NCBI GenBank assembly: GCA_964036045.1
Contig: OZ038378.1
Coordinates: forward strand, 117,366,001-117,430,000
Length of the DNA: 64,000 nucleotides
Source of the DNA: Eutreptiella sp. 'Long Island Sound 2002'
Lineage: Eukaryota > Protista > Euglenida
Reading direction: 5' to 3'
The notes beneath the pieces were generated by a model that was given only the letters and a program-made list of their open reading frames with translations, was not told the DNA's origin and ran no database searches. Every line of letters starts with the position of its first letter. The first letter of the stretch is position 1. The position numbers and the translations under genes were made by a program. Of the stretch, positions 11,251-37,360 are shown piece by piece.

Positions 11251-12111
11251 AGAAAAAGTCACTACCACATCTTTTGTAGGGGACTTGATCCAGGCCAAGG
11301 CCCCCCTTTTCTTTGGAAAGTAATGAAAACTAATATTTAATCATCTCTATCACTCTTTTGAAGCATAAAGTACATTTTTCAAAGTAACTAGGGTTATAAC
11401 CCTAGCCGGGAAGTTCACCCCCTACCACTCAAGTGAGCAGAGGTATCGTCCTTCATGGAGGTAATACCGAAATAAACCAGGCACTTCATGCCTTTTTTCT
11501 TAGAGGTTAAGCCTAGTGGTGTCCCACCTGAGGACCTAGATACTCAAATGTTTCACCCACTTATTGTGGTTCTACTTTTTAACTGATTTTGAACTCAGTT
11601 GCTTGGCCAAGCTGGCCAAGCCATAGCCTGTGTCTGGCCCAACCTACTTGCCTCACGTTCCTAACCAACTCCATTGTATCTCAAACAGCGCACATGAAGT
11701 GCTTGTGACTATCCTTGGGGCCAAACTTATGCCAGCTTTCACTATAAAATCATTTGGTTTGCTTATAAAAAATTGAAGCTATGTACTTAAGCCTACATTG
11801 CTCTTTGTGCAGCCCCTCTTTTGCTACACATGCTTTAAATTGGAGGGATACTTTCCTGACATTGAAATCGATCTGGTATTTGGGTTGCCTTGCTCCGCTT
11901 CTTTGTCATTTCACACTTGGAAAAAATCCATCAAGGTTTTCATCTACAAAAACAACAAGCAAGAAGGAACAAACACATCAAGGGCAAACCAGAAAGCTTT
12001 TCTGGTAGCACAAACAGCCTCCCACGTGCAGGCTAAAGCATCGAAAGGCAATCTGATTCCACTATGTTTGTAACACTCACTGCCAAAACATTGCCCATCA
12101 GGTCCAGACCG

Positions 12112-14283: not shown

Positions 14284-14300
14284 CCCTTGGTACACGCTAG

Positions 14301-17300: not shown

Positions 17301-20300
17301 CGGCTAGAGCGGCTAGAACGAAAAAAAGAGGGGAATACCCCCCCCGGGGGGGCGGGAGGGATGAGGTGTCTAACTTGGACCCCCCTATCCATACTCGGGG
17401 GCCCATACTTTTTTTTCACAATTTCACTGTTTTCACGTGATTTTGGAGTCCAAAATTTTTTCGTTCTAGCGGCGTTCTAGCGACGTTCTAGCGAGCGTTC
17501 TAGAACGTAGCTAGAACGCCGCTAGAACGGCCAGGACTGCCGGGTCCCATGGCAGGTCCAGGAGGCCCCCCGCAGCCCTCGACCCCATCAACCCCCTCAG
17601 CCAGTCGCTCGCCCCCCCCCCCCTCGGCGCCGCCTCCACCACCTTGGTCTCCTCCTCCTCCTCCTTCACGCTCGCCTCCTCCATCTCGCCGTGTACGTCC
17701 ACCTCCATCACCTCGTCCACCTCCTCGTCCTTCACCCTCGCCACCACCACCGCCAACTCGCTGTCGCTCTGCCTCACAGCCCGATCGAACCCCTCGATCG
17801 CCGCCTGCTTCTCGACCACCTTCGCCTTCGCCTTGCGAAGGTCTGCCTCCCCCCACAGGATCCTCTCCTCCTCCGCTCCCTCCTCCACGAGGCTGCGCAA
17901 TTTTGCCTCCCAGGCTGAGACTTTCGTCTCCGCCCTTGTCTTGGCCGTCCTGGAGGCGGCGCGGGAATCCAAGAACCCTTTGAGCTCTCCCCGCGCGACC
18001 TCCACCTCCGCCGGTTCCTCCAACGCCGCCGCCCCCTTCCGGGCTACCCATGGGGGAGGGGGTGGCGACTGTGGATGTGGGGCTTGGGGTTGGGGCTTGG
18101 GCTTGGGCTTGGGCTTGGCGAGGGGGGCCTTGGGGTGCGGGGCCTGCTCGGCCTTCGGCTCCGCCTCCTCGGCCGAAGCTGCACGCCTGTCCGCCTCCAG
18201 GATCTACGCAATCAGCGCCTGGGTCGCTGCGTTCTGTAGCATAGGAGCGTTCTAGCGGCGTTCTAGGCAACTGTTCTAGCGGCGTTTGAGCGACAGTCTA
18301 GCGGCCGATCGTGCTGCCTAGATCAAGGCTAGAACGATTCCCTAGATCACCGCTAGAACGCACAGCACGAAATATACCTGCCTCACCAGCTCGTCCAACT
18401 GCTCTCGACTTGCCATCTTGGATTGAAATATTCTGGTTCAGGGAAGCCTGCATGTGACCCTGGCCCCTCCTTACCTCCATGGCATCCCTGCCCGAGCATG
18501 GCACTTGCGACCGCGCCCCCCCCTGCACAACCCACGACACGTCAAAGTACGCAAACAACCATGTCATGCACTGCGCTTGCACATTGACCTCCCTGTGGAT
18601 GGCCGACAATTGACGACCCGACACCTCGTCCACCCCCTCCACCCGACACCCCCCCCCCCCCCCCGCCCCCGGTTGCTGTGCTCGTTGTGACCATGTTTCA
18701 GACGGCGGTTAATGCTTTCCGAAATGTCAACGGAGAACATAGCCAGGCCAAATGGCTTAATGCCCAATCTCTTTCTAGCCGAGAACCGGCTAGAGCGGCT
18801 AGAACGAAAAAAAGAGGGGAATACCCCCCCCCCGGGGGGGGGGGGGGGATGAGGTGTCTAACTTGGGACCCCCTATCCATACTCGGGGGCCCATACTTTT
18901 TTTTTTCACAATTTCACTGTTTTCACGTGATTTTGGAGCCAAAAATTTTTCGTTCTAGCGGCGTTCTAGCGACGTTCTAGCGAGCGTTCTAGAACGTAGC
19001 TAGAACGCCGCTAGAACGGCCAGGACTGCCGGGTCCCATGGCAGGTCCAGGAGGCCCCCCGCAGCCCTCGACCCCATCAACCCCCTCAGCCAGTCGCTCG
19101 CCCCCCCCCCCCCTCGGCGTCGCCTCCACCACCTTGGTCTCCTCCTCCTCCTCCTTCACGCTCGCCTCCTCCATCTCGCCGTGTACGTCCACCTCCATCA
19201 CCTCGTCCACCTCCTCGTCCTTACCCTCGCCACCACCGCCGCCAACTCGCTGTCGCTCTGCCTCACAGCCCGATCGAACCCCTCGATCGCCGCCTGCTTC
19301 TCGACCACCTTCGCCTTCGCCTTGCGAAGGTCTGCCTCCCCCCACAGGATCCTCTCCTCCTCCGCTCCCTCCTCCACGAGGCTGCGCAATTTTGCCTCCC
19401 AGGCTGAGACTTTCGTCTCCGCCCTTGTCTTGGCCGTCCTGGAGGCGGCGCGGGAATCCAAGAACCCTTTGAGCTCTCCCCGCGCGACCTCCACCTCCGC
19501 CGGTTCCTCCAACGCCGCCGCCCCCTTCCGGGCTACCCATGGGGGAGGGGGTGGCGACTGTGGATGTGGGGCTTGGGGTTGGGGCTTGGGCTTGGGCTTG
19601 GGCTTGGCGAGGGGGGCCTTGGGGTGCGGGGCCTGCTCGGCCTTCGGCTCCGCCTCCTCGGCCGAAGCTGCACGCCTGTCCGCCTCCAGGATCTACGCAA
19701 TCAGCGCCTGGGTCGCTGCGTTCTGTAGCATAGGAGCGTTCTAGCGGCGTTCTAGGCAACTGTTCTAGCGGCGTTTGAGCGACAGTCTAGCGGCCGATCG
19801 TGCTGCCTAGATCAAGGCTAGAACGATTCCCTAGATCACCGCTAGAACGCACAGCACGAAATATACCTGCCTCACCAGCTCGTCCAACTGCTCTCGACTT
19901 GCCATCTTGGGTTGAAATATTCTGGTTCAGGGAAGCCTGCATGTGACCCTGGCCCCTCCTTACCTCCATGGCATCCCTGCCCGAGCATGGCACTTGCGAC
20001 CGCGCCCCCCCCTGCACAACCCACGACACGTCAAAGTACGCAAACAACCATGTCATGCACTGCGCTTGCACATTGACCTCCCTGTGGATGGCCGACAATT
20101 GACGACCCGACACCTCGTCCACCCCCTCCACCCGACACCCCCCCCCCCCGGCCCCCGGTTGCTGTGCTCGTTGTGACCATGTTTCGGACGGCGGTTAATG
20201 CTTTCCGAAATGTCAACGGAGAACATAGCCAGGCCAAACGGCTTAATGCCCAATCTCTTTCTAGCCGAGAACCGGCTAGAGCGGCTAGAACGAAAAAAAG

Positions 20301-23219
20301 AGGGGAATACCCCCCCCGGGGGGGGGGGGGGATGAGGTGTCTAACTTGGACCCCCCTATCCATACTCGGGGGCCCATACTTTTTTTTTCACATTTCACTG
20401 TTTTCACGTGATTTTGGAGCCAAAAATTTTTCGTTCTAGCGGCGTTCTAGCGACGTTCTAGCGAGCGTTCTAGAACGTAGCTAGAACGCCGCTAGAACGG
20501 CCAGGACTGCCGGGTCCCATGGCAGGTCCAGGAGGCCCCCCGCAGCCCTCGACCCCATCAACCCCCTCAGCCAGTCGCTCGCCCCCCCCCCCCCCCCCTC
20601 GGCGCCGCCTCCACCACCTTGGTCTCCTCCTCCTCCTCCTTCACGCTCGCCTCCTCCATCTCGCCGTGTACGTCCACCTCCATCACCTCGTCCACCTCCT
20701 CGTCCTTCACCCTCGCCACCACCGCCGCCAACTCGCTGTCGCTCTGCCTCACAGCCCGATCGAACCCCTCGATCGCCGCCTGCTTCTCGACCACCTTCGC
20801 CTTCGCCTTGCGAAGGTCTGCCTCCCCCCACAGGATCCTCTCCTCCTCCGCTCCCTCCTCCACGAGGCTGCGCAATTTTGCCTCCCAGGCTGAGACTTTC
20901 GTCTCCGCCCTTGTCTTGGCCGTCCTGGAGGCGGCGCGGGAATCCAAGAACCCTTTGAGCTCTCCCCGCGCGACCTCCACCTCCGCCGGTTCCTTCAACG
21001 CCGCCGCCCCCTTCCGGGCTACCAATGGGGGAGGGGGTGGCGACTGTGGATGTGGGGCTTGGGGTTGGGGCTTGGGCTTGGGCTTGGGCTTGGCGAGGGG
21101 GGCTTTGGGGTGCGGGGCCTGCTCGGCCTTCGGCTCCGCCTCCTCGGCCGAAGCTGCACGCCTGTCCGCCTCCAGGATCTACGCAATCAGCGCCTGGGTC
21201 GCTGCGTTCTGTAGCATAGGAGCGTTCTAGCGGCGTTCTAGGCAACTGTTCTAGCGGCGTTTGAGCGACAGTCTAGCGGCCGATCGTGCTGCCTAGATCA
21301 AGGCTAGAACGATTCCCTAGATCACCGCTAGAACGCACAGCGCGAAATATACCTGCCTCACCAGCTCGTCCAACTGCTCTCGACTTGCCATCTTGGGTTG
21401 AAATATTCTGGTTCAGGGAAGCCTGCATGTGACCCTGGCCCCTCCTTACCTCCATGGCATCCCTGCCCGAGCATGGCACTTGCAACCGCGCCCCCCCCCT
21501 GCACAACCCACGACACGTCAAAGTACGCAAACAACCATGTCATGCCCTGCGCTTGCACATTGACCTCCCTGTGGATGGCCGACAATTGACGACCCGACAC
21601 CTCGTCCACCCCCTCCACCCGACACCCCCCCCCCCCCGCCCCCGGTTGCTGTGCTCGTTGTGACCATGTTTCAGACGGCGGTTAATGCTTTCCGAAATGT
21701 CAACGGAGAACATAGCCAGGCCAAACGGGTTAATGCCCAATCTCTTTCTAGCCGAGAACCGGCTAGAGCGGCTAGAACGAAAAAAAGAGGGGAATACCCC
21801 CCCCCCCGGGGGGGGGGGGGGGGAGGTGTCTAACCTGGACCGCCCTATCCATACTCGGGGGCCCATACTTTTTTTTCACAATTTCACTGTTTTCACGTGA
21901 TTTTGGAGTCCAAAATTTTTTCGTTCTAGCGGCGTTCTAGCGACGTTCTAGCGAGCGTTCTAGAACGTAGCTAGAACGCCGCTAGAACGGCCAGGACTGC
22001 CGGGTCCCATGGCAGGTCCAGGAGGCCCCCCGCAGCCCTCGACCCCATCAACCCCCTTAGCCAGTCGCTCGCCCCCCCCCCCCCTCGGCGCCGCCTCCAC
22101 CACCTTGGTCTCCTCCTTCTCCTCCTTCACGCTCGCCTCCTCCATCTCGCCGTGTACGTCCACCTCCATCACCTCGTCCACCTCCTCGTCCTTCACCCTC
22201 GCCACCACCGCCGCCAACTCGCTGTCGCTCTGCCTCACAGCCCGATCGAACCCCTCGATCGCCGCCTGCTTCTCGACCACCTTCGCCTTCGCCTTGCGAA
22301 GGTCTGCCTCCCCCCACAGGATCCTCTCCTCCTCCGCTCCCTCCTCCACGAGGCTGCGCAATTTTGCCTCCCAGGCTGAGACTTTCGTCTCCGCCCTTGT
22401 CTTGGCCGTCCTGGAGGCGGCGCGGGAATCCAAGAACCCTTTGAGCTCTCCCCGCGCGACCTCCACCTCCGCCGGTTCCTCCAACGCCGCCGCCCCCTTC
22501 CGGGCTACCAATGGGGGAGGGGGTGGCGACTGTGGATGTGGGGCTTGGGCTTGGGCTTGGGCTTGGGCTTGGGCTTGGCAAGGGGGCCTTTGGGGTGCGG
22601 GGCCTGCTCGGCCTTCGGCTCCGCCTCCTCGGCCGAAGCTGCACGCCTGTCCGCCTCGAGGATCTACGCAATCAGCGCCTGGGTCGCTGCGTTCTGTAGC
22701 ATAGGAGCGTTCTAGCGGCGTTCTAGGCAACTGTTCTAGCGGCGTTTGAGCGACAGTCTAGCGGCCGATCGTGCTGCCTAGATCAAGGCTAGAACGATTC
22801 CCTAGATCACCGCTAGAACGCACAGCACGAAATATACCTGCCTCACCAGCTCGTCCAACTGCTCTCGACTTGCCATCTTGGATTGAAATATTCTGGTTCA
22901 GGGAAGCCTGCATGTGACCCTGGCCCCTCCTTACCTCCATGGCATCCCTGCCCGAGCATGGCACTTGCGACCGCGGCCCCCCCTGCACAACCCACGACAC
23001 GTCAAAGTACGCAAACAACCATGTCATGCACTGCGCTTGCACATTGACCTCCCTGTGGATGGCGGACAATTGACGACCCAACACCTCGTCCACCCCCTCC
23101 ACCCGACACCCCCCCCCCCCCGCCCCCGGTTGCTGTGCTCGTTGTGACCATGTTTCAGACGGCGGTTAATGCTTTCCGAAATGTCAACGGAGAACATAGC
23201 CAGGCCAAACGGCTTAATG
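14301..23219. repeat. Six head-to-tail tandem copies of a 1484-1488 bp unit (transposon end plus 3' part of the transposase gene)
   Basis: Unit junctions at AATG 14301, 15789, 17273, 18759, 20245, 21732 and 23216. Copies are near-identical and differ by SNPs and homopolymer lengths. The same ORF set recurs six times in the track. Confidence 0.97.
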
Positions 23220-24841
23220 TTCTGCAACATGGTATCTACATCCTGCTCAAGGCTTAGTAGATACCATGATGCTGTTCCAGCAGTGCAGTGTCGCCGGAAA
23301 CCGCGCGCAACAGCAGCATAATTCAATGGGTTAGGGCCGTGATATGTACAATAGATGGCCTGCAGCAGGTCCCACATGTTCGCGATGGCCTTGTACTTGG
23401 CCGTGCTTGGCCTAATGCCGAGGCACTCAGCAATATCCGGCCATGCGTCAAAAAAGTTGGCCGTCTCCTCCCCATCCGGGGATGCCGACCCATAAACGCT
23501 CCAACCTGCACGCCTCTCCGACAGGAGAACTTGCAGGTTTCGACGGAGCGCAGGGGTGACCAACCTAGCCTCCCTATCGACAAACTCCCCCAACAAGCGG
23601 CCCATGGCCATTGTCAAGCGCAAAATGCACAAGACGACCGAGGCACGTGGCAATTTCAAAATGGGCTGCGTACTACAGCTGGCGGCTTGCAAGGACGGCG
23701 TCCCAAGGAGGAAGGCCGTGTAGTTGGCCTCATCACCCTCCATGGTCCGCGGGTTAGCACTACCCTCCCAAGTCTTCGTTGGCGCATTCCATATGCCCTC
23801 ATTGAACATGGAGCCCACTTGGGGGCATGTGGACAGCCCGATCACCCGTCGCGTCCACAGTTGATCCCCCCCGAGGATCACCTTTGCCTCCTCCTTGGAG
23901 GCCCCCCAATTGGACCAGCCCCGTGTCGATGATATCTTGAATCACGTGAACACGAGACATGGGGGGTGGTTAATTTCGTTCTAGTCTAGTCCACTCTAGC
24001 GTCTAGCGAGCGGTGTTTGAGGCCGACTAGATCAAAACTAGAACAAGTGAAAGGCACTAGGTGAGAGGAGTACCTCCCAATTGCTCTTCCATAATGTCCC
24101 AAGGGTCTCCATGGCCTTGTCATCGCAATTGGCCATGCTCAACACCCAAAGGCCTGCTGGGGAGCGGGCCAAGCGCTCGAAGTTGGCCAAGTAGATGGTG
24201 AGTTGGGTCCAATTGCCCCCGGCCACGGGGTAGGCATCTCCCCGGACGATGAACGTCAAAGGAAAGTTGCGGTTGATTGACCGCACCAAGCCCGGCCGGG
24301 AGAGGATGTATGTGACCCATGAGGCGAAGGGCCATGAGATCCCGGTGGCCTTGGGCAACACCGTGGCAACGGGGTCATCCAATTGCACCGGGGCGACCTA
24401 CTCCTTCCAACGGGCTTGGAAAGCCCGCTCGGTACAAATTGGACGGGAGTAGGGGCCACTAGGGACGGTGCGGTGATACTCCAACTTACGGAGCGTGTAG
24501 AGCTCCGAGAGGGTCCTCCACGAGGACTTGGGGGCCCTCGTGTTGAGCACTAGTTCACACATGGCGGTGGGGGGAAGTAGGGAGGCGGTGTATGCCTCAA
24601 CGGCGGCCTTGCATGCCTCACCCGTGGTTTGGGTAGAAGTGGCGGAGTTCACATGTTGGACGGCGTTGTTGAATTGCCGCCGTGCTAGGGGGCATGATAG
24701 CACCCACGTGGCCAAGTAACGGCCCACCCGCTCATCCTTTCGGTTTGAGGCCCCACTCAACTCCCGTAGTGCCTTAGACAAGAGGGAAGTATCCTTCGCG
24801 GGTGAGGAGGGAGCAAGGGGGGTAGTGGCGGGGCGTTTCAT
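21960..24841 (-). pseudogene. Intron-containing DDE transposase, RAG1/Transib/Chapaev-like, with a C-terminal coiled-coil/acidic tail
   Basis: Exon 1 is 24841-24074 (one TAG at 24398): ..LTFIVRGDAYP..QLTIYLANF... Exon 2 is about 23945-22838: ILGGDQLWTRRVIGL, VLCILRLTMAMGRLL, SWYLLSLEQDVDTML..PFGLAMFSVDISESINRRLK..H. This matches the GDG / GGD.KF..GL / H.LR / FS....ES.N pattern of Transib/RAG1-type enzymes. The GT-AG intron 22837-22694 joins in phase 1 to exon 3 (22693-21960). Intron 1 (24073-23946) has a GT donor, but my inferred acceptor reads AC. Confidence 0.7.
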
Positions 24842-25775
24842 TGCAAAGAAATGTGCAATATCTAAGCGGGAAAGAAGGAAGCATGGAACAATGCACTACG
24901 GGCAATAGCAAGCAAGCATGCACGCACGCACGCATGGAACGATGAAGAAATTGGGATATGTTGGTAGACATTATATCGTTCTAGTATTGATCTAATCTAG
25001 GCTAGAACGTTCTAGCTAGAGCGTTCTAGGCTGCAACGAGATTGGGTCTTCTAGCGTGTACCAAGGGAACTGGCAACCTAAGTGCCTGCAGGCTGCCGGC
25101 GTGGAGGTGAAGTTCCGTGAAGAGGGATCCGGCTAGCGGCCAAAACATTAACGCGAGGGACTGTAAATTCTGAGGGCGGCAACGAAAAAGGGAACATCTA
25201 GCTTGAGTGTGTTGGGGCAATGCACCTCATGCGGAACAAGGGGTGGGAAACCATGATAGATGAGTGTGTGGATAGGGTGGGGCCGGAAGGGGGACGTGTT
25301 GTAGGACAACTGTGGGTGGGCGTATGCCGCAAGTGTTGGACCAATTTTAGCGCCACGTGCGTGTTTGCATGGCAGACACAGTGGTCCACCGGGTATGACC
25401 TAAAGGGATTGAGGGAGTATAGTGTTGCAATGGGTAAAGCCCATGTACAGTTGTAATCGGGGAAACTTCTGCGGCCCCACTTGTTGATAGACCACATGTA
25501 TTTTTTTGCTCCCTAGTGGCGAATCCTCTCCAAAACTTGCACGTTTTGCAATGAAGGGGATCCAATGGCGACTGAAGCGTGTGTTGTGTAATAGTTGGGG
25601 CCTAAACCTCTTGCAGGGGGGGAGGGTATGGGTATGCAGGTGGTTGTGGGTAACCACACAGGGCATCTCTTGTGTTGTTTGTTTCTCAGTGTTTGTTCTA
25701 TTTACGTTCTTTCCATGGATTCCACGATGTTCCAAGAACATCACCTAGATCTGGGAGTTGTCAGCCCTTCGATAA

Positions 25776-26111
25776 TTGCCCGTTTCGCGCGCCCAGGGGG
25801 GCGGCTCCGAGGAAGAGGATTTGGTTTTCTGGATCACCGTTAAAAGAAGTGATCACGTTTACAAAGCGGTCTTGGACACGCGCGCCACGCTCTCAATCGT
25901 GGCCCGCAGATTGCTAAGGCAAGCCAAGATCCGGAAAACCAAAACCGTGGCCATAAGGGTTGGGAATGGTAGGACCATCCATTCCCTGGGGGGGGGGGTC
26001 GATGTGACCGTGTGTCTAGGCGATAAAAAAATGACCCACCACTGCAGAGTGCTAGACACCGACGCCTTTGACACTGTCATTGGCACAGATTTTCTGCACC
26101 GTAACCCCTAG
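25776..26111 (+). pseudogene. Retropepsin aspartic protease of gypsy element A
   Basis: KAVLDTRATLSIV (LDTGA motif), IRVGNG, and DTVIGTDFL (ILG.DFL motif). Confidence 0.9.
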
Positions 26112-26222
26112 GTGAAATTGTTGTCTCTGCAACCTCCCTATGCCCTACACTGCGATTTCGGCGGTGGCATTTCCTCTGTCCCTCTGGAGCTGCCACGATG
26201 AGAAAAAGCCGTTTTACACTAC

Positions 26223-26660
26223 GTGAACCACTTTTATCGAGCTCAAAACTATCAGTTGGTGCGACCCGTCTTGGAAAATGCACTGGCCCCCCTGCAGGTA
26301 GACCTGAATAAAGTTGAAGTGGAATTGTTCGCGAGTAAAGAGCAGCACATGATTCAGGTCCACTGTTCGCGGTATCTCAATAACGCCTATCGCTTCTACC
26401 TGAGATCGATGGGGTTGTGCTATGCAAACCCTCCATTCTCCCAACTCGCTAAGGTGTTGACCAAAATCGCCCTTGAAGGAGCGAGAGTTGTGCTGTGCAG
26501 CCCGGAAAGGGGTTCTACAGGGGAATAAGCCTATTGGAGGTGTTTACTGCACCGTATGACAGTGGGAAGAAATGAACACTCCAACGGTTGCATCTACGTT
26601 CCTGAAGACTCTCAAGAGACTATGCCTGCCCCTAAATGGGGCAGTCTCTTGTCCATCGTT
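26223..26660 (+). pseudogene. Dam-like DNA N6-adenine methyltransferase domain within the pol of gypsy element A
   Basis: QNYQL..VEVELFASKEQH..NNAYRFY..LCYANPPFSQLAKVLTKIALEGARVVLCSP....YW. NPPF lies at 26427-26438. Same reading frame as the protease, separated only by point-mutation stops. Confidence 0.85.
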
Positions 26661-27449
26661 GATGGCTCTCTCAACCCCGTACCGGTGTGTGACCAGGAAG
26701 TGCTCAAGGAGTTGATGGCCGAAAACCGAGGCCTTACGCTCCTGGATCCCAAGAGGAGATCCGAGTACTCTTCGGTCACCACTACGAGTGGTGAGTGCTA
26801 CCATGAGCAGAGACTCACGTAGTCCCTACTCGTGTGGCTGATGCTGATGACAACCTAAGTGAGATCTTCAGCTCAATACCGCCCGTGCATCCGGAGGTGT
26901 TGACTTTGTAGCATAGCGCGTTCCTAGCGCAACTGCTTATGGAAGAGGTGGATCTTGGTGAGTCCACCTCTGATGGGTCTCATGACCACGCTGTGTTCTC
27001 AATGCGGGCCTTAGATGGCCCTATAGGTTAGGTACCTGACGCTAAACACTCACCCAACAACATACCCGTCTCTAAGCACGATGTGCGAACCCTTCAACAG
27101 GTCCTGTGGGCTAAGGCTGAGGGTATCAAGCGACGGACCCGCCTGGACCTCCTCAAGGGGACGTGGAAAACCTCGATATGGTCCGAGGAGGATGATGAGG
27201 TGATGACTCTCCCGTATCCTGAAACATCCCTGGTATACTGCCTTCACTATGCCCAGCAGGGTTGCCACGACTAGGAGGATGCATTGCCCCCCGAAACTAT
27301 GGGTCGCATCAAGAAACAGGAAAAAGAAAAGAGCAGCCTCCCCGCTGAGGAGTATTTTTCTGAGAAACTTCAGGGCATGAACCTTGACTCTAGTCTCACT
27401 AAGGTCATCAAGGAATATCAGGAGGTTTTTCGGGGCGTTGCCCCCACCC

Positions 27450-28399
27450 CTGTCTTGCAAAAAATTGGTCCACATCGACCTCAAACTCAAACCTGAGTTT
27501 GAAGGGTCGGTGGCAAGACGGTGTCCATACCCCGCCCCACAAAACCCAATCGAAGAGATCGAACGTCAAATCTAGGAATGTATAGGTGCTGGCCTCGTCG
27601 ACAAGTATAAACACAGGGACTATCTGGCCATTGTAGCCCTTGCTTCCTTGTGGCTAAACCTGGCTCCACTGTTATGCGCTTGGTCGTTGACTATGGTGAA
27701 GTCAACAAGAAGACCAAAAACCACTCAAGGAGTATCCCCAACATGGAGAATACCCCGGAAAGAAGTGCAAGGCGTCGATTCAAGACCAAGATGGATAAGC
27801 GCAGTGGTTTCTGGCAAGTAGACCTAACCCAAGCAGCCCAGGAACTGCTCGCCTTTGTCACCCCTAAGGGCCGTGTCTTCCGCTGGAAGGTCATGCCCTT
27901 CGGTGTCGCGAATGCCCGTGCACTCTTTCAGGAGCTGATGAATAAAGTCCTATATATCCTGAGACGCAGACCCCTTGTGCAGGAACTGGTTTCCCGCGGG
28001 GCTGAGATGGAGGCACACATCGACGACGTGAGCCTGTGTACTAATACCCAGGAGGATCCTATCCTCCTCCTACAAGAACTTTTCACTGTCTGTCAGGAAA
28101 ACTATCTCCGCATCAAACTCGAGAAATGTGAGTTCATGCATGGGGAGATGAAATATCTAGGTTGCGACGCAAGGTATGTCTGGTGGAAACCAACTGCATC
28201 GAAGATGCAACCCCTGCAACACATGCAGATACATGATGAACCCAAGAAGGGTCTGCACAATGTACGGAGTTTCATTGGCGCTTGCATTTTTAATCGGCGC
28301 CATATTCCTAATTTTACCTATTCATCAGCCCCCTTGACTGTCCTTATAAAGAAGACCAACCCTCGGCGGTGGACCGACAAGGAGGAGGCCTATTTCTAG
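27450..28399 (+). pseudogene. Reverse transcriptase of gypsy element A
   Basis: SPCFLVAKPG, MRLVVDYGEVNKKT, SIPNME, KMDKRSGFWQV, FRWKVMPFGVANA, HIDDV, KLEKCEF, YLG and RSFIG. Confidence 0.95.
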
Positions 28400-29676
28400 G
28401 AGTTGAAGAAGAAGATATCCTCTACCAACTGCCTGGGGGTACCCCGCCCTAAGGGCGAGATCAAACTCATCACACACGCCTGTGATGTAGGGCCATGAGG
28501 CAACGGAAACTGGGCTCGCATACGCCCCCGTGTCACAGGCGCATGGTCATAATCACATTGTTCAGTGTTATGCTTGCTGCTCTGCAGCGTACACCAGTTC
28601 TGGACCACACCAGGTGGTTGCTGACTGTGCATTGGCTCTGGTCCTCTGGACACTGAGGTCAGCTCGCACTCACCACCCACCCACAGTGCCGGTTAGTCTC
28701 TAACCCTTGCCCTGCAGGTCGTGCTCCTGTCATGCACTTGCTCCCTGGCACGTGAGGACGTGTCGTACTCCAGCCTCGGGGGCGCAAAGGCGCCTTTGGT
28801 GGCGCAAAGGCGTCTCAAATATTCATCAAGTGCTCCAGCTGTCAGGCAACTCAACAGTTCATTGCTGTACTGTGTGTGGCGCATTTTTGTTCAGCTCCAC
28901 ACCATGCATGCGCATGCTGCCCACATATTCATGCCCACTTGCTTCCGTCTTCCTCACATGGGCCGCACTCTCGCAGCCTCAGTCATGCTTGGGCCTTTCA
29001 ACACGTAACGACGTGTCGAGCCTGTGGCTCAGGGGCGCAATGGCGCCCTGTTATTTAACCATGTGACTGTTTTGTGTTGTTTTGGCGTCCCATACACCCT
29101 GGTCAGCTCAAACCCACCACCCTCCCTTTGCGCCGGTGATGTAGGGGGGGGGGGGGTACCCTACACCAGTGGCGGAAGCTTGACCTTGTTAAGTTGTCTC
29201 ACTGCCGATATCATACTTCACGTTTGAACCGCGACGGCACGTTGAAGCATGACTACCTTGCCAATGAATGGCGCCTGGTGCCCCTTGGGCACTGGAACTG
29301 GAAGTGGAATCAAGCACGTTCCAACTACAGTCCCTACGACTAGGAACTGCTGGCTGGGATGCTCGTGCTCTCTTCGCAGTCCCGCCTCCTTGGCACTAAC
29401 CCTATTGTGTGGCTCTGTGACCAGGAGCCTGTGAAAACATTTTTGGAGGGTCCACGTCCTGAAAAAGCGCAACCAAAACGATGGTGGACCTATCTTAGTC
29501 AGTTATCTGTCCACCATATACAGGGTATAAAAACCGAAATGGCTGATTATATGTCGCGTAAGAACTTTGATGCCCTCTTCGGGGAGATCTCCGAGTCGTC
29601 GGCCAAAGAGGCTTTTCAACACATGGATGTCCAGCTAGACCTGTCCATGCGTGCTGCAAGTGTCCTGGAGGGTTGA
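28400..29676 (+). pseudogene. RNase H of gypsy element A, split by a 642-bp insertion
   Basis: ITHACDVG|GGGTLHQW..PLGHWNWKWNQARSNYSPYD*ELLAG..WLCDQ..HHIQGIKTEMADYMSR. Confidence 0.9.
28493..29134. mobile_element. 642-bp insertion flanked by an 11-bp direct repeat (GTGATGTAGGG)
   Basis: The duplication lies at 28482-28492 and 29135-29145. Removing the insert restores the RNase H motif ACDVGGGGTL. No TIR or poly(A) is seen. Confidence 0.8.
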
Positions 29677-29799
29677 AGTATGAGAGACTACCGAGAGGAG
29701 TACCAATGTGTACTTCAAACCCTCAGTGATGGCCTACAGGCACGCCTAATAGACGGCGACCGTTGGTATAAAGATAACCAGTACCTCTACTATGAGGAC

Positions 29800-30814
29800 C
29801 CGCATAGTCGTGCCTCAGGCACGACTGGACGGTTGCCTGCAGTGGGCCAATCTCAGTTCAAGGCACATAGACTGTAACCGCTCTATTGATTTCTTCACGG
29901 AGTGTTTCTACTCCCGACTAACCTTGTCTGAACTACGGTCGCGAATGCAGTCCATAGTGGACTCGTGTAGGTGTCATGCCATCAAATAGAGCGACCCTCG
30001 TGACCGGGGATTGGTCTCGAATCTGCCTATTCCCTACTGTGCTAACTCTCTGTTGTATGTGGATTTCATCCACGGTTTGCCTAGGTTTGGTGGTTACGAC
30101 AACTGTCTTGTTGTCACCTGTGGTCCGAGTCGTTTCAGCCGGGCGTTCCCCTGCAGCAAAAAGATCACACGGGAACAGGCTGTGAAAATTTTGGTGGAAC
30201 AAAGATTGGAACCCTACAGAGCCCCTAAAGAGGTGCACTCTGATGAAGATGTACGCATCAAGAGTGATACCGGGTGATACAAGCCAGTGTTGGGCGCTCT
30301 GAACGTCCAGGTAACCACAGGTGTGCCCTGCACTCACACTTCCAACCCAGAAACTTAGAGTCCAGATGAAACATAAACGTACTAAAGATTGGGTACGCTT
30401 GTTACCCCGGGCTGTCCTAACCATTAATTCTCAACGGAGTTCCTCAACTGGCTATACCACCCACGAAATATTCCATGGGGGACGTCCTGCATGGTGTTTC
30501 AAAACCCCTTTCCTGATGACTACAAGAGCCCCATAGGGGATTGGCTAGAACACAAGCAAGACGTAGCCAACATAGCCAGAGGTAACCTGAAGCACGTTCG
30601 TGAACGTGAGTTGACCAGGCGTAACCGCACGAGTCGTCCTGCCAGTTTCAACGTAGGAGACTTGGTGCTTGTACACCACTCGCGATTGCCCTCATGGCCT
30701 TGCAACTGTTTGCAGGACCCAGGGTCCTATCGTATTACAAAAATAAATGGATCCAAGATCCATTTGAGGTGCAGCTCCCACCCAAGTGGAGAATTGCTGT
30801 GTGCCCCGAAATAG
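29800..30814 (+). pseudogene. Integrase of gypsy element A
   Basis: Zinc-binding H..C region (RHI..CRC), LYVDFIHGLPRFGGYDNCLVVTC, EVHSDED, LPRAVLTINS, and the GPY/F-like FNVGDLVLV..GSYRI. Confidence 0.85.
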
Positions 30815-30937
30815 TTGAGACATTACCAGTCTCAAGACGACCTATCCTGAGATGAGTGGCGCCTCACTGACAAAGCGGTTGACGGTATCCATCTGGAGAA
30901 CGCTGCCAACCTTGAGGAGGCAGACGAACTCGAAGAG

Positions 30938-31177
30938 ATGACTGCCGATGAGATGGTAGTTGATGGCTACTACGTGGTTGGAGGTATTGCACGCCACGAG
31001 TATAAACAGGGTTGTAAATTCCTTGACTTGTGGGATGGCTATGGGCTGTCTGAGGCGACCTGGGAGCCCATGTCAGCCTTTATACAACCTGATTGGACTA
31101 TCAATCCCATCTTTTGTTCCTACCTCGTTGAGAACAACGAGGGTCGGCTACTAACCCGCGCTGAGACCCTGTCATAG
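30938..31177 (+). pseudogene. C-terminal chromodomain of gypsy element A
   Basis: YYVVGGIARHEYKQGCKFLDLWDGYGLSEATWEPMSAF fits the chromodomain pattern Y.V..I....K.L..W.GY..SE.TWEP. Confidence 0.85.
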
Positions 31178-32999
31178 TGTAAGAAGAATAACTAATCTCC
31201 TTGTGCCTATCTATTTGTTGCTCCTAACCGAACTGAGGTGGTTGCAAGCTTCAGAAGGCAGTGGCACTACCTGGACATTCCCTCTTCCCATAGGGAGTCT
31301 CTTTCGCCCCATGCCTGCAGGCGTATTGGCTCCTGGAGGTGCACTTGCCCCCCACGAAGGGAGGCAACACTGGGGGTCGTCGGAATACCACCAGGCCGCT
31401 TTTCAGGTTTGTAGCCCAATGGTCGTGAGTTCTACTACCCCATCCTCCCACCGTGCCATCATCTTGCACTGTGTAGTACCAAGAACGCGCCCACGCGTTG
31501 GAGTAGGTACCCTTGGGGTCAGTTCAGTTCTGGATTTCCACCTCCTTACGACCACCTCAACTGCGGGTCACCTGAACACGCCGGCCTACGTGAACGGGTT
31601 CCCTCGCTTCGGAACTCACAATTGAGGGCCCTTACTCGCAAACCCCTCTGTCTTAGGTGGGCACTCTTGTGCTGACAACTAGGCCTAATCAACGTGTGCC
31701 TTGACAGGTTCAGGACTCATGTAGAGCTCGAGTTTCAGTGAGTGTACTAACGCCCACCCTCTTTCAGGTTTGGTTTTTCACCCATGTCCACATGCGCTGC
31801 TTTAAGAGCCCTGCCCCTGCCTTGGTGGTGCCCTGCACTCCCATGCCGATGGTTACCAGCATGTGCCAGATGGCCGGTTATCAGGTTTGCAGCCACCCAG
31901 CGAGTGAGTGCCTTGTTGACCACGTGTGGCATGGGATGTGCCCTAGTGTGATAACCTTTGGGGAGCCAACGATAAGCGGTGGAATTTCAATTATTGATTC
32001 AGAGGACCCGTTGGCAACGTTTGTTGCCCTTGAGTGGCGAAACCCGTCCCCATATCATTCGTAGGCAGCTGCCAAGCAAGCTCCCTGGCATAAAAAAAAA
32101 AGGTGTTGGAGGAAGAGGCCAATGCAACCCTTAGTAGTGTTTTGGTCAATTTCAGTGGGGTGGACCCTTCGGCGGGTTGCAACTAGTTTGAATATGAAAT
32201 CCAGACGTTTTCAATCTGAGTATCCCTTCACCTCTCCAACCACTATTGCACTATTTGGGCGGGGGGGGGGGGGTAGTGGTTCACTATAAGCATGGGCGGT
32301 CGATGTCCAAAATTCCGGCCCTAACAAACACGCCTAACACCGATGGCTAAACCATGAAGGTGGAGCAATGTCAGCCCCGTTTGGACCCGGACCCTATCAG
32401 TAACCTGGGCCATACAGAGGTTGCTGAGAAAAAATCTCTCGAACGCCTAATGCAGGGAGATAAACAGATAGTTACCTACACTCGGGTCCTTCATCCCGGA
32501 TAACTGCGGTATATTCGGTTCATTCCAACTCCTCGGCGAAGCACGCTCCTACAGACTTGTCCGTTGCAAAGAAAACTACAAAGCAAGAATCCACAAACGG
32601 GTGAACAGCACCGGGGGGGGGGAAACAAGCCATACCCGGGGTATCGGCTAACCCCTCTTACACCCCCGATGCGCATAACTCATCCCCTTCGCACATATCT
32701 TCATTGGTTTCGTGCCGCACACCTTGGAAAAAACAGAGAGCAACAGACATGGACTAGTGCATTGATTGGGTTCCACCAATGGAACCAATTGAGACACCAT
32801 CAAAATTGTCGCGGCATCCCTAGCAATTCATCCTGGCGCACCTAAAGATTTCTCCTATGTGCAAGGTCTGCGATCTATAATTCACAGAAATAACAATTTT
32901 CTTGCACCGCTGAACCACAATGGTATCAAAATCATTAAGATCTGTTCTGATGAAGACAACCGCAACCGTGAAAACAGCTCTGCGGCAGTACCAATTACC

Positions 33000-35900
33000 A
33001 CTACCACCAACGCATCTGAAAAAGGTCCTCTCCATACCGGCCTAAGACCTTTTGAACTACTGGTATTTATTATCTCTCAATTCAAACCTTCGCCACAAAG
33101 CCGCACTCATAGACTGCAAACGTAAAAACCGCTGTCGCTACGGTGCAAGATGTTGGCTTTGTCATTAACAATCCACCGCTCAACACACCTTTTGCACGGT
33201 TTTTTTGCAATTCAGATTCCGCAGATTCAAAAACTGATGTATCTCGGCAGCCACAAGATTCTGGTAACCCTCTAGTGCCCTTGATAGCTGCAAAAGCCAG
33301 GCCAGAGTCCACATTATCCGAAATGAACATTTATCCTCGGTGAAAAGGCTCTTTCGCACCACATGAAGATCAATGGACAATAGCCTCCAAGAGAAGTCAT
33401 TGGACACCTTCAAGAATACGACATACCGGGTTAGATGATGAAATGCCGTCTTGTAAGGATTGCAAGAATACCTTTGCACTTAGCGATGAAATTGCTAACG
33501 GATCTCTAACCAGAGGTTTGAATCTGCCACTAGGTTGCCGTGACTCTCAACTGAAGAGAAAAACATCTCGAGATTCACGCAAACCCAGTTAAGCAATTCA
33601 ATCATAAAGTGTCGTTTGTCCCCAACGGCACGTGTCCAATTCCAAACAAAAACTACTCAAAGTTCAACCACCATGTTGTGCCGTACCTGTCAAAACGTTT
33701 TTCTAGTCCGGACAACAAAGTCAGGTGAACGTCAATCGCTCAAAGTAAAGGCCTGGGACTCCGCGCCATCAAGCAGTTCCTCTTCAAGCCACGATTTACT
33801 GTGAAACCGCTCAAAGATACTGGTCCGAACCACATGGAAAACATGAATATGATGATTCACTCGCTCGAAAACAGTTCTGGGACGTCAACTTTCCGGCATC
33901 TAACGGGTATAACGAATGTGGTAGATCCAAGTCTCGAGATGAAGCGGACTCCGTAGGTCATTCAACAAGCCACCAAAGTCTGGAAGAGTCTTCATCCGAA
34001 GAATCCACCACATCAAAAAGAAGATCTCAGCAGGCTAAGCACATCAAGCTTCGGACGTTTAAAAATTGGGTTGGTCTAAAAGATCAAAGGCTGCTTCTGA
34101 ACCTGAAGCACGCACTTCTCAATGAAGATTCACCGCCCCTCCTCAAGGCTTGGACTTGGGCCCAATGCGCTCAACATCAATACAAACATTTGTCACACTC
34201 TACTGACATGATCGATCTTGTCGTACGAAAGATAACACGCTCAAAACAGCACCGGATGCAGAAACACCACGGCCTTGGTTTTGCATGCTGTCTTGGGTTG
34301 GGGATATTTGTAAATTGGGTGTCATTTGCTTTTCAAGCTCGTGTTTTTGGCCCAAGTTGTTCGTCGGCTTTCTTCCCTGAATCTACCTCAATGGCCATCT
34401 GGTTTTTGTTTTTTAACAAACACAATAACTTCAGGACAGCTTGGATGTGTTTGATTTAAAGCAGGCCAATGAAACCAGCTGTGATCAGAGCTCGTGATCA
34501 TTTTCAAGTCGATGGTGCCACAGGGAGTGCTCGGCACACTATATTGAAATCTTTTGTCAGCACTTCAAGTCAAGACTTTGGTTCCATCAGGCAGCGCTTT
34601 GTGCCCTGGTGTGCTGTATACAAAGTTGCTGTCCGTCGGTTGAACTTCGGCTCACCAAGCACGCTTTTCCCTTGGTTAGGCCGCCTTTTTCATACTCTTG
34701 GGCGGGAAACTGCCATGCCTCGACAAAAAAATTGAACTAATTGAGTATGCAAACCCAAATCCGCATGTAATGACTGGGATTGGGCACTCTCCAAAAAAGA
34801 AGATGGTGTTGTCAACAGAGGTAAAGGCAAAGGGCCTAAAGGTGGTAAGAACAAAAGCAGGGCAGGCAACAAACGGGAGAAAAGCGCGTCGCAGGGACGT
34901 GGAAGCTATAACTAGGAGTGCTGAGAGGCGCTCCCTTTTGGAAAGAGAACCCCTGGAGCATCGTTGTAACACTCTTCGGGCTCTCGTGCCCGCGACAATC
35001 CCCCAAGGGCATATTGTATATAGTAACATTCGAACCGAACTATCAGTTCGGATTGTTCTGCTGAAAAGAGACTTGCGTGCCCTAGTGGATTTTGGGTTCC
35101 AAGAGCCCACATTGGCGAACCCAAATGCTTTAGGCGATCAAATTTTTGAAAACCTTATCTTCCTTGTTCAAAGGCGCCTCGTACAGGCAACTAATAGGAC
35201 AACTTTGCCGGGGGGGATGAACAAATTGATGCAAAAATCCATTTTACGGGAGTTACGGATGAGAATGTTTCGCTTCCTTAGGTTGCGCAATACAGTGTGT
35301 CCCGATATTTGGTGCCGGACCTGCCATGGGACATGGTGTATGGGTACCCGTAGCGTCGTGCGCATTGTCCGAGCGATTTTGCTGGTTTTATTTGTTTGTA
35401 TTCACACCACCCCGTGCAACCCCGTTTTTGGATTGCAGATTTTTGCAAAACTCCACGAACCGGCAAACTGGTGTCGGTCAAACCCATTCAAAGTAAAGTG
35501 TCACATCGAACGCCCTGGAAATAACCGTTCTAGTCATTGGGGCGTTGGTACCCACCCTCTAGATGCCTGCTATTGTGATGGAGCCTCCTAATGGGGAGCC
35601 ACCGAGCCCAACTATCGCCGAAAAGCAAGTTTTCTACGCTTTTATGGCTTTGTCAGTGGCCCTTGTACCAAATCGTGCCTGTGCTTTGGAGCTCGTAGAA
35701 TTTGTTCCTCAGACCATCTCTCGTGCTGTCCTACCAACACGGCGTGATTGGTCCATTTCGAAGCACTCTGACTACAAGGTCACTGCATAGTGCGCCAGGT
35801 GGGTCGCAAAGCAATTTGGCACAAACCGTGAAGTGGACATCTTCAACATGGTCCAGGGATTGGCCCAAGCCACTCTCGTCGTGTGACATGGTGATGATTT

Positions 35901-37360
35901 CTTCTTAACACCCGCAAACCGCTCCAGATTGTATTGGATGTGTCCACCCCATCATCGGTTGTCCGATTGTGTCGGGAAAGTTTGGCTTGAGGAACTACGA
36001 GCTATGGTTGTAGGGCCGCAACGGACAAATAGGGAGTGGTGGCAACCTCTTATTGGGTTTCTCTTGCAACCGTACCATCTCCTTGGGCCCGAAACCAAAG
36101 CCTGCCTGGATCAGGATTCCTAGCTCACGCTCCTTCCTCAACGTAAATGGTCCATGGTGGTTGTACATGTGGACAGAGGGCTTGCCGAGGAAAGTTTGGT
36201 GGCCAGTAAATGTCGTGTGGCCTCCGCCGTTCCTAACATTGACACGGATGATGAGCTGGGTACAACCTTGGAGGAGGAGTTGGAGAAGGACAGGGTGCCT
36301 AACCACCCGGTTGCTGTGTGTTCCCTCACGTAGCAAACAACTCATAAAAAACTCCGGGCCCCCGCTACTCTTGACTCTAGTCCGGAAGATTTGGAGGCCC
36401 AAAAATGCGTGCTTCAGGCATTGCCAAAATTGAAACAGCGTTTTTGCCAGGAGGTACCGCTTCCGTGAAGCACTGCCAGAAAACTAATGGTGCCAAGCGT
36501 TTGTTGGCTGCTTCCGGTGTGGGTGGTGTGGTTGGCATCCAAAAGCCTATGACGTCTCCGGAGGTGGAACTCATGAGAAAACGTATCCTCGCTGTCTATC
36601 AGCGGGATGTGTTTAGTGGGGAGGTTCGCCTACGTCCGGGCCAGACACACCCTAAATTCCATGGCCCGGATGCTATTGGGTTCACCAAACTTGAGCTACA
36701 CCCGGGTGCTAAGTCGAAGTCCGTGAAACAAATAAGATTCGTTACCGCGGTTGAGTTAGAAATTGCGGAGGATTTCTTGGCTCATGGATGGATTGAGCCA
36801 TGTGTTGCCACCGGGTGGCCATCAAATGGTTTCCGGGTGCCCGAGAATGAAAAAGGGTAATGGCAACTCGTTGCTGCCTATCGCCAACTCAGTGAGGCTA
36901 CTATGCCCGACGCGCACCCCCCCCCCTCATTGAAATAAGATTTTCACTATTGTGGACTTGACGAAAGGTTTTCACCAAAATGCACTTGCCCCAGAGTCCC
37001 GGGTTAAGACCAGAGTGAATTTGGTGGGAAAGAGATACCAGCCGCGTGTTATGCCTATGGGTATCAAAAATGGCCATCTATTTTTCAACGGGTCATGGAC
37101 AACATTTTGAGGGGGTCGGATAGTGCCGAAGTATATTTTGATGAAAGAATTATTGGTTCTTCTGGTGATGCGGAGGAGGAACTTTTGGCAACTCACACAA
37201 CCGCGATGTGCGGGTCGTGTTGGATTTGCTACAGAGGGAGGAACTTGTGGCTTTGGTTAGTAAAACCGATTTCCTTGTCCGTTCGGTGGAGTTTTTTAGA
37301 TGTATCCACAGTACGTGAACCATGTGTCCCGACGTTTGAGGAGTTCCAGGATTTCTTTGG
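33000..37360 (+). mobile_element. Second, divergent and more decayed Ty3/gypsy remnant B (gag-like, PR-like, N6MTase-like, RT), 3'-truncated
   Basis: Degraded protease-like LEITVLV.GA at about 35515. RT motifs WPSNGFRVP..KG*WQLVAAYRQL..ATMPDAHP (36815-36925), VMPMGIKNG..FFQRVMDNIL and VYFDE (37045-37145). Both boundaries are approximate. Confidence 0.7.
35761..36180 (+). pseudogene. Divergent N6-adenine methyltransferase-like domain in the pol of gypsy remnant B
   Basis: SDYKV..REVDIFN..DDFF..LYWMCPPHHRLSDCVGKVWLEELRAMVVGP..EWWQPL..LPQRKWSMVVVHVD is colinear with the element A domain. Motif IV reads CPPH (35941-35952). Confidence 0.6.

Follow-up and report, generated by a model that had tools for sequence, protein, structure and literature searches.

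Methyltransferase domains in retrotransposons

DIRS elements carry a methyltransferase-like domain after RNase H and are further characterised by a tyrosine recombinase and inverted or split repeats. The methyltransferase domains of these DIRS1-type tyrosine-recombinase retrotransposons (Goodwin & Poulter; Poulter & Goodwin 2005, both as relayed in PMC4738411) have been judged likely inactive and placed in the PCIF1 clade (Iyer, Zhang and Aravind, PMC4738411). A second kind of retroelement with a captured nucleic-acid methyltransferase is found in dinoflagellates and charophytes, where the enzymes are C5-cytosine DNMTs (de Mendoza et al. 2018, PMC5890265).

The closest described elements are the 'DAM-LTRs' of a preprint of May 2026 (bioRxiv 10.64898/2026.05.21.726589), defined in its main text as Ty3/gypsy elements whose DAM domain derives from DIRS elements. 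They are reported there from Chlorophyta, Ochrophyta, Ichthyosporea, Pyropia and Euglena gracilis, with chromodomain-bearing ones in E. gracilis. The same text proposes 6mA on the replication intermediates of DAM-LTRs, links 6mA to permissive chromatin and reports more methylated copies among the DAM-LTRs of E. gracilis than among its other LTR elements; dam-deficient E. coli did not gain 6mA from the eukaryotic DAMs. For some mixed Euglena DIRS/LTR clades, nesting of insertions or artefacts of assembly are considered possible, and the Methods give 1e-5 as the threshold of the DAM screen. The order protease, DAM domain, reverse transcriptase (RT) is not stated in the main text of the preprint, its figures aside.

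The element described here lies in a stretch of 64 kb of Eutreptiella DNA (hereafter the window). Its family resembles the DAM-LTRs, as defined in that main text, in its Ty3/gypsy-type Pol, in the DIRS-type DAM domain within the same ORF, in the retention of the N-P-P-aromatic motif and in the chromodomain, which some DAM-LTRs also have. It differs in its match to the Pfam Dam family PF05869 (E 6e-4 with the whole Pol to 3.5e-5 with the isolated domain), which is weaker than the 1e-5 of the published screen as given in the Methods, and for this reason the family is possibly outside the published set. Since no DNMT domain was found here, it is not one of the elements that the preprint's text calls 'EpiLTRs'. 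The initial annotation knew of no description of the architecture, and this has been overtaken by the definition of DAM-LTRs; the headline architecture is not new because it has been published in the preprint. By its Pol architecture, the window family belongs to the DAM-LTR kind and may be an unlisted member below the cut-off of the published screen.

With DIRS1-type elements the family shares the methyltransferase-like domain and its motifs (D-x-F-A ... NPPF ... K ... P-x-W), whereas its domain stands before RT rather than after RNase H, its integrase is of DDE type, with H2C2 finger and chromodomain, and its LTRs are ordinary direct repeats. It is similar to the DNMT-carrying retrotransposons in being a retroelement with a captured nucleic-acid methyltransferase, but the domain is of N6-adenine type.

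The window copy and its intact relatives

The window copy (11246-31982) is an old, dead, 3'-truncated member of a high-copy Ty3/gypsy-type chromodomain LTR retrotransposon family. It bears about 23 stops and several frameshifts, has taken up three insertions and lacks a 3' LTR; a second LTR copy was found nowhere in the window. All its LTR and coding remains are on the + strand. The 5' LTR (11246-11983, end approximate) aligns by blastn with that of an intact copy (L022:1306-2027) at 74% identity, and its terminus, GAGTAAGAAAAAGTCACT, is common to this and other copies with differing flanks. A gag broken by four stops and a frameshift follows at 12058-14274 (tblastn with residues 2-751 of the gag of intact copy L021, 46-71% identity). 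Inside the gag end, a foreign insertion of about 10.8 kb (14275-25067), across which homology to intact copies skips from 14274 to 25068, includes a 1.49-kb tandem array with direct repeats at 20005-23275 spaced 1484-1490 bp apart. The final 61 bp of the gag region (25068-25128; blastn 80-82% to L021:4293-4353 and L022:4317-4377) are separated from pol by 666 bp (25129-25794) that are missing from intact copies and lie exactly at the gag/pol junction, the flanking homology blocks being 666 bp apart; in L021 the gag stop adjoins the pol frame.

The protease and the Dam-like domain of the window copy occupy a single frame (window positions divisible by 3), which runs through the protease part (25776-26108), a short broken stretch, a 108-aa piece (26202-26525) with the motifs ELFAS (26322-26336) and NPPF (26427-26438), and a further piece (26529-26819) that carries on the domain and the linker, with in-frame stops at 26109, 26199, 26526 and 26820. 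The retropepsin (25821-26108) matches PF13975 at E 1.9e-7, as well as PF13650 and PF00077, and its active-site DTG has become DTR, compared to LDTGAT in intact copies. The core of the Dam-like, methyltransferase-fold domain (about 150 aa, Pol residues 136-284) lies at 26226-26672, interrupted by the stop at 26526-26528; the initial annotation had recognised its presence correctly and had begun it at 25776, a position that belongs to the protease. A linker of about 300 aa with a frameshift near 26807 (26673-27610; tblastn to Pol residues 285-600) leads to RT and matches no recognised Pfam family in either the window copy or the intact Pol. RT itself (27611-28396) matches PF00078 at E 4.5e-24. 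The RNase H region is split by a 643-bp insertion (28493-29135), seen as a gap between homology blocks 25795-28492 and 29136-31200, and the remaining RNase H, the integrase zinc finger and the DDE core (29990-30274; PF00665 E 1.5e-4) are found in a broken state at 29136-30811. A C-terminal chromodomain (30851-31174; Pfam Chromo E 0.033) ends the coding part, and the copy stops within the start of the non-coding post-pol region (31806-31982; blastn 85% to L022 and L050).

Intact copies are about 11.25 kb long and consist of an LTR of about 745 bp, a gag of about 790 aa that matches no Pfam family, one Pol ORF of 1,587-1,595 aa with the Dam-like domain in frame, about 2.5 kb without ORFs (none longer than 133 aa) and the second LTR. 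Pol is ordered as protease, Dam-like domain of about 150 aa, linker, RT, RNase H, integrase and chromodomain, with Pfam matches to PR (5-92), Dam (156-216), RT (613-783), RNase H (851-1010, PF17919 and PF17917), H2C2 (1115-1155, weak), rve (1190-1288) and Chromo (1519-1548). The reading in the initial annotation of a Ty3/gypsy element with a Dam-like domain between protease and RT, followed by RNase H, integrase and chromodomain, agrees with the window copy and the intact Pol alike, and intact copies with the three parts in one continuous frame, which it had proposed to look for, exist.

The paired LTRs are 99.2% identical in the C9 copy (over 724 bp of the 5' LTR) and 96.2% identical in the C2 copy, and a purine-rich tract precedes the 3' LTR. 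The first bases of the 5' ends differ between copies (GAGTAAG, TGGTAAG, CATTAAG), and no clear target-site duplication was seen among the few junctions read. Direct LTRs, the PR-RT-RH-IN order and a DDE integrase, with no recombinase in Pol, make this a Ty3/gypsy-type element. A chromovirus feature, the C-terminal chromodomain on the integrase, is present according to profile and sequence matches: the Pfam Chromo match of the intact Pol is below cut-off (E 0.05), and phmmer against PDB sequences matches this region to the chromodomain of CDYL2 (E 1.9e-4) and to those of ZMET2, LHP1 and HP1. An 'LTR-less gypsy' reading was also considered, as the first three reference copies had no terminal repeats and seemingly sharp 3' ends; it was ruled out when these ends proved to be other inserted transposons and the 3' LTR was located about 2.5 kb past pol.

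Relationships, conservation and abundance of the Dam-like domain

PF05869, the Dam profile that the initial annotation had suggested searching, is the only Pfam family that matches the 108-aa piece of the window copy, at E 0.019 and 15 bits against a gathering cut-off of 28.1 bits. Intact homologues reach 19.9-24 bits, also below cut-off, and the intact domain matches TIGR01712 (phage_N6A_met) at E 0.006 and 16 bits, far below the cut-off of 97 bits. The alignments to both profiles are limited to positions ~21-105 of 165-169. PF05869 is matched by 82 of the 87 aligned domain sequences, and seven of the 87 also match PF12237 (PCIF1_WW). Searching the library with a profile of the domain yields 9,132 proteins, and identity to the DAM domains of the library and of sister families is 19-46% (75% for one close relative). 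NPPF and the near-invariant positions are all retained in the domain, apart from a conservative exchange of D for E in the D-x-F-A motif, which here reads E-L-F-A, a variant shared by six of 150 library representatives; N-P-P-F/Y/W is kept in only 98 of the 150. PDB sequence searches with the single sequence and with the 87-sequence profile found no methyltransferase. By profile matches and motifs, the domain is homologous to the DIRS and small-phage Dam family (PF05869, TIGR01712).

The AF2 model of the domain (pLDDT 88.2, pTM 0.82) predicts a class-I N6-adenine methyltransferase fold, with phage Dam enzymes as the nearest neighbours and PCIF1 after them. In BFVD the best matches are phage DNA N-6-adenine methyltransferases, which dominate the top 12 at E 1.3e-7 to 4e-6 with a target-normalised TM-score of up to 0.81 (Serratia phage Tsm2), and PCIF1-like giant-virus proteins appear at E 1e-5 to 1e-3. 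Among solved structures in the PDB the best neighbour is PCIF1/CAPAM, an RNA enzyme (Foldseek E 3.7e-4, VIA Z 9.5), and then two RNA N6-adenine enzymes, KsgA/DIMT1 and RlmJ, before M.TaqI (Z 7.0), T4 Dam (6.8) and EcoDam (6.6). The small phage enzymes are the closest predicted structures, share motif IV and belong to the only Pfam and NCBIfam families matching, whereas the domain forms part of the polyprotein of a eukaryotic retroelement instead of a free phage enzyme and scores below both curated cut-offs. With the cap-specific mRNA adenosine N6-methyltransferase PCIF1/CAPAM (PDB 6irv-6is0) it shares the NPPF motif; in contrast to that protein it has neither a WW domain (Pfam) nor a helical cap-binding domain, and the alignment is confined to the methyltransferase core, roughly 140 of 480 residues at 15-19% identity.

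A search of the 2.28-Gb assembly gave 16,598 first-look candidates for the family, whose copies number in the thousands. All 150 candidates scored had E < 1e-47, many of them inside long open frames, and the distance from the methyltransferase domain to RT is 1,497-1,515 bp in every copy common to both top-40 lists. Comparisons, both dN/dS and alignments, were made on natural copies only. The dN/dS of the Dam-like domain is 0.115 (78 pairs) and is exceeded by those of the protease (0.20) and the linker (0.24); between the window copy and an intact copy dN is 0.10 and dS 0.81. The domain is thus under purifying selection, stronger than on its measured Pol neighbours, and is an integral part of Pol held across the family.

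Four identical intact ORFs on contig 7 might be taken for recent bursts; they are segmental duplicates, since their flanks are identical, and a better sign of youth is the LTR pair with 99.2% identity. A search for homologous proteins with the domain region returned only five near-identical ENA proteins, and related ORFs are present in an independent ENA assembly. One estuary metatranscriptome contained four contigs of 94-154 nt with 90-99% identity, the other datasets with matches appear to be DNA, and mapped reads showed no clear evidence of transcription. The Euglena spliced-leader 24-mer occurs 3,309 times in this genome, compared to none for the reversed control.

Six other long ORFs of the same genome, from about four gypsy-like lineages, align with this family and match PF05869 at 29-40 bits, above cut-off and always upstream of RT, and at least five divergent families have the domain in this place. 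NPPF is replaced by CPPY in a sister gypsy family and by NAPF in L040-type families. The CPPY motif was taken from pattern matches in the genome: a 23-base pattern around it has 716 sites, nearly all of which, among the matches listed, read CPPY, and many matched sites are inside open frames of 1,658 aa, with hundreds of young copies. Pfam found nothing in the degraded fragments of the CPPY family within the window. Both the NPPF and the CPPY families have clearly been active recently.

Candidate roles of the domain

We give a roughly even chance to the proposal that this element, being of the DAM-LTR kind, carries the domain in its particle and N6-methylates adenine on its own replication intermediate. 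The Dam-like domain would travel within the Gag-Pol particle and, using SAM, would transfer methyl groups to N6 of adenine, either on the element's cDNA or on its RNA:DNA hybrid. Newly made insertions would as a result be marked with 6mA, a modification that the main text of the 2026 preprint connects with permissive chromatin and reports from E. gracilis, and the chromodomain may help to pick the integration site. By homology and predicted fold, the domain is a putative and unproven 6mA writer. Points counted against the proposal are the sub-cut-off profile scores, the negative E. coli assays in the text of the preprint, the CPPY and NAPF sisters and PCIF1 as the best solved match. The judgement of inactivity for DIRS1-type domains (PMC4738411), the canonical motif in only 98 of 150 representatives and the lack of a clear sign of transcription were counted in the same way.

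It is somewhat unlikely, in our estimate, that the domain is not a DNA 6mA writer at all and either acts in a PCIF1-like way on RNA or an RNA:DNA hybrid of the element or has a non-catalytic role. As a PCIF1/CAPAM-type RNA adenine-N6 methyltransferase, it would modify the genomic RNA of the element, with DNA not a substrate, at the cap-adjacent adenosine or at internal sites, and the mark might stabilise the RNA or let it pass as host RNA. The ranking of PCIF1/CAPAM, KsgA/DIMT1 and RlmJ ahead of M.TaqI, T4 Dam and EcoDam in the PDB would fit such an enzyme, as would the PF12237 matches, the PCIF1-like giant-virus proteins, the PCIF1-clade placement of the DIRS1 domain (PMC4738411) and the negative E. 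coli DNA assay in the preprint's text, which is compatible with an RNA substrate. However, the PDB holds no PF05869 structure, and once predicted structures are included the E-values of the small phage DNA Dams are better than those of PCIF1-like proteins by some two orders of magnitude; sequence profiles also rank Dam and phage_N6A_met first, the WW and helical cap-binding modules are lacking, and higher 6mA on DAM-LTR DNA in E. gracilis is reported in the main text of the preprint. We consider an RNA-specific enzyme quite unlikely.

A non-catalytic job, whether as nucleic-acid or SAM-binding module, as spacer for the folding or processing of Pol or as PCIF1 mimic, is in our view doubtful. 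It would account for the CPPY family with its many intact ORFs, for NAPF in the L040-type families and for the absence of canonical motif IV from one third of library representatives, and it is in keeping with the negative enzyme assays in the preprint's text and the inactivity argued in PMC4738411. Library proteins include decayed copies, however, and motif loss is to be expected among them; CPPY may be a later change in a single lineage with little bearing on the NPPF family, and the window family keeps NPPF in a domain with the lowest dN/dS of the three Pol segments measured. That the segment might instead be a nested DIRS or other foreign insertion missing from most copies, as the initial annotation had allowed, or else an assembly chimera or a chance motif, is extremely improbable. 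The preprint's text allows for nesting or artefacts in some mixed Euglena clades, and the window copy itself holds three unrelated insertions, yet the domain is in frame within a continuous ORF in dispersed copies on many chromosomes, stands at a fixed distance from RT, recurs at the same place in divergent families, has related ORFs in an independent ENA assembly and is under selection, and on these grounds this reading was tested and rejected.

The analysis makes a modest but usable addition, namely a divergent and very abundant DAM-LTR family under the published E-value threshold, together with direct evidence that purifying selection acts on the domain and a confident model in which phage Dams and then PCIF1 are nearest. 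Should the domain prove not to write 6mA on DNA, it would be necessary to revise the function that has been proposed for DAM-LTRs and for the methyltransferase domain of DIRS elements, a long-standing puzzle, and the swaps of the catalytic Asn (CPPY, NAPF) would reveal what selection preserves. The NPPF, NAPF and CPPY sister families amount to a natural experiment within one genome.

The window copy and its family

Translation of window 25599-27650 in the protease frame bears out the initial annotation of a Dam-like segment after a retropepsin and in frame with it. On the forward strand, a retropepsin piece (25776-26108; PF13975 aspartyl protease, E 1.9e-7) is followed, after a short broken stretch between 26108 and 26202, by a 108-aa piece carrying VELFAS and YANPPFSQLAKVLTKIALEGARVVL (26202-26525) and its 97-aa continuation (26529-26819). 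The feature is thus real, but the start first assigned to it is that of the protease, and the core of the domain lies at 26226-26672. Downstream, Pfam recovered the RT (27611-28396, E 4.5e-24), integrase core (29990-30274) and chromodomain-like end (30851-31174), all on the forward strand and in the order originally described.

Alignment to intact copies of this high-copy chromodomain family, here called the NPPF family, placed the forward-strand 5' LTR at 11246-~11983 and gag at 12058-14274, with a 10.8-kb foreign insertion (14275-25067) in the end of gag, whose final 61 bp follow at 25068-25128. A 666-bp insertion lies at the gag/pol junction, pol forms two blocks (25795-28492 and 29136-31200) parted by a 643-bp insertion, and a short block follows pol (31806-31982); no 3' LTR was found anywhere in the 64-kb window. 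The copy is old and dead. Its pol has about 23 stops and several frameshifts, its DNA is ~80-85% identical to the intact copies compared, and the protease active site (25830-25850 region) reads LDTRAT, against LDTGAT in intact copies, as one among many inactivating changes. The 10.8-kb insertion contains minus-strand ORFs and a GC-rich tandem array (repeats at 20005-23275, period 1,484-1,490 bp, copies 85-99% identical).

When the genome (2.28 Gb, 2,317 contigs) was searched with the 108-aa piece, 16,598 first-look candidates emerged; all 150 that were scored had E < 1e-47, many within long open frames. The same genome holds 3,309 occurrences of the Euglena gracilis spliced-leader 24-mer, versus 0 for the reversed control, which, together with the genome size, points to E. 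gracilis or a very close relative. The continuous PR-MT-RT frame expected of intact copies is present, e.g. in the reference copy L021 (gag 792 aa, Pol 1,587 aa), whose Pfam matches along Pol are, by residue, PR (5-92), Dam (156-216, E 6e-4), RT (613-783), RNase H (851-1010), rve (1190-1288) and Chromo (1519-1548). The chromodomain is confirmed by matches to those of CDYL2, ZMET2, LHP1 and HP1.

The family is a genuine LTR retrotransposon of ~11.25 kb. An LTR-less element was considered and rejected, the apparent 3' ends being other transposons inserted in the first copies chosen; in other copies, a 745-bp LTR is met again ~2.5 kb downstream of pol. The LTRs of a pair are 99.2% identical in one case and 96.2% in another, and the 3' LTR is preceded by a purine-rich tract. 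From the stop of pol to the 3' LTR, full copies have ~2.5 kb (L051 reverse strand 156-2690; L050:272-1744), an unusual length for a gypsy element, and no ORF exceeding 133 aa was found there in the copy examined. At G000:C7:85.81-86.29 Mb (L004-L007, L021), four copies have identical 1,595-aa frames and identical flanks on both sides, and are therefore segmental duplicates of one insertion, in which another transposon sits at L021:9230. At G000:C17:32401518-32405176, three LTR-region matches with exact 1,579-bp spacing adjoin a full copy and may represent local tandem amplification of the element's 5' end.

The domain as part of Pol

The domain is an integral part of Pol. It is in frame within continuous ORFs on many chromosomes, and in every copy common to both top-40 lists the distance from domain DNA to RT segment is 1,497-1,515 bp. 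Pairwise Nei-Gojobori comparison of natural copies only gave a domain dN/dS of 0.115 (78 pairs, mean dS 0.27), indicating purifying selection, with 0.20 for the protease and 0.24 for the linker; the window copy against L021 gave dN 0.10 and dS 0.81. Six other fetched long ORFs, from about four further gypsy-like lineages in the same genome, carry PF05869 above the Pfam cut-off (29-40 bits), in all six upstream of RT, with RNase H and integrase next where the frame continues. On frame, RT spacing, dN/dS and these sister lineages, a nested insertion, a chimera and a chance motif were all rejected.

Sequence and fold of the domain

PF05869 Dam, the sole Pfam family on the 108-aa window piece, matches it below the 28.1-bit cut-off (E 0.019, 15 bits); formal family membership fails, on score alone. 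The domain can be aligned with those of sister families and with 83 domains from the library, where a profile search matched 9,132. Among the 87 aligned sequences, 82 match PF05869 (best E 4e-12) and seven additionally match PF12237 PCIF1_WW; the only NCBIfam match is TIGR01712, phage N-6-adenine-methyltransferase, at E 0.006 for the NPPF family and 2e-10 for one sister family, with no match reaching its cut-off. The near-invariant columns (Y, F, A, W, N-P, K, P-W, W) are all kept in the NPPF family, with one departure, D-to-E within the D-x-F-A motif.

An AlphaFold2 model from the 87-sequence alignment (pLDDT 88.2, pTM 0.82) best matched, among predicted viral structures, small DNA N6-adenine methyltransferases of phages, at E 1.3e-7 to 4e-6 and with target-normalised TM-scores of up to 0.81; giant-virus PCIF1-like proteins came next (E 1e-5 to 1e-3). 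The solved structures searched include none of PF05869 type; PCIF1/CAPAM comes first there (Foldseek E 3.7e-4, VIA Z 9.5), then KsgA/DIMT1 (Z ~8), M.TaqI (7.0), T4 Dam (6.8) and EcoDam (6.6). Together, alignment, profile matches and fold neighbours identify the domain as a Dam/DIRS-type N6-adenine methyltransferase fold.

Related elements and possible activity

The initial annotation tentatively took this architecture to be undescribed, which is not supported. In a bioRxiv preprint dated 22 May 2026 (10.64898/2026.05.21.726589), DAM domains are reported in Ty3/gypsy LTR elements, there named "DAM-LTRs", and the identification is stated to be the first of its kind. Its authors count four or more independent lineages and, besides these, a mixed Euglena group; a chromodomain is present in some and an added DNMT in some. 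The preprint also states that the N-P-P pocket is conserved, that E. gracilis has more methylated copies of DAM-LTRs than of other LTR elements and that eukaryotic DAMs expressed in E. coli gave no 6mA gain, and proposes that 6mA is placed on RNA-DNA intermediates. The threshold it gives is hmmsearch E 1e-5; the NPPF family, at E 6e-4 to 3.5e-5 against PF05869, is weaker and may have escaped that screen, while the sister families would pass. In a library protein of 1,114 aa (P0046) of copia order (rve - Dam - RVT_2), this same domain follows the integrase and precedes the RT, in agreement with the preprint's 'Chloro-Ochrophyta' description. Our literature search found no other paper combining Euglena, retrotransposon, methyltransferase and chromodomain.

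Whether the domain methylates is judged from evidence on both sides. Catalysis is favoured by selection, an intact NPPF and the Dam-like fold. That it is needed universally is argued against by families with other motif IV residues and by the library, where only 98 of the 150 top-ranking representatives retain N-P-P-F/Y/W. One such family, a second, divergent gypsy family with a Dam-like domain likewise upstream of RT, is present in the window as a forward-strand fragment (35563-37109) reading YWMCPPH; a 23-base pattern around its motif has 716 sites genome-wide, with CPPY at nearly all among the matches listed, and many of these sites coincide with open 1,658-aa frames; a recently active family thus lacks the catalytic Asn. 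Others have NAPF (L040, L041, L042 and L044, on G000 contigs 8, 12, 2 and 23), and it is these that give the strongest PF05869 scores among gypsy-like families (32-40 bits), with Pol frames up to 1,774 aa. That the domain is kept for a non-catalytic role is accordingly a minority reading, somewhat unlikely given the intact NPPF. An RNA-directed, PCIF1-like activity is a little less probable still; PCIF1/CAPAM leads the solved structures, but phage DNA methyltransferases lead the predicted viral ones. Iyer, Zhang and Aravind (PMC4738411) assigned the methyltransferase domain of DIRS1 to the PCIF1 clade and thought the domain inactive. Read mapping was uninformative on expression: four short contigs came from one estuary metatranscriptome, and deep coverage only from runs of unknown kind, DNA-like in look.

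The initial observation is thus confirmed, and its interpretation as a gypsy lineage with its own 6mA writer is partly supported. The NPPF family is a further member of the already published DAM-LTR kind, and we hold with roughly even confidence that its domain would be an adenine-N6 writer that the element encodes, with cDNA or hybrid as substrate.
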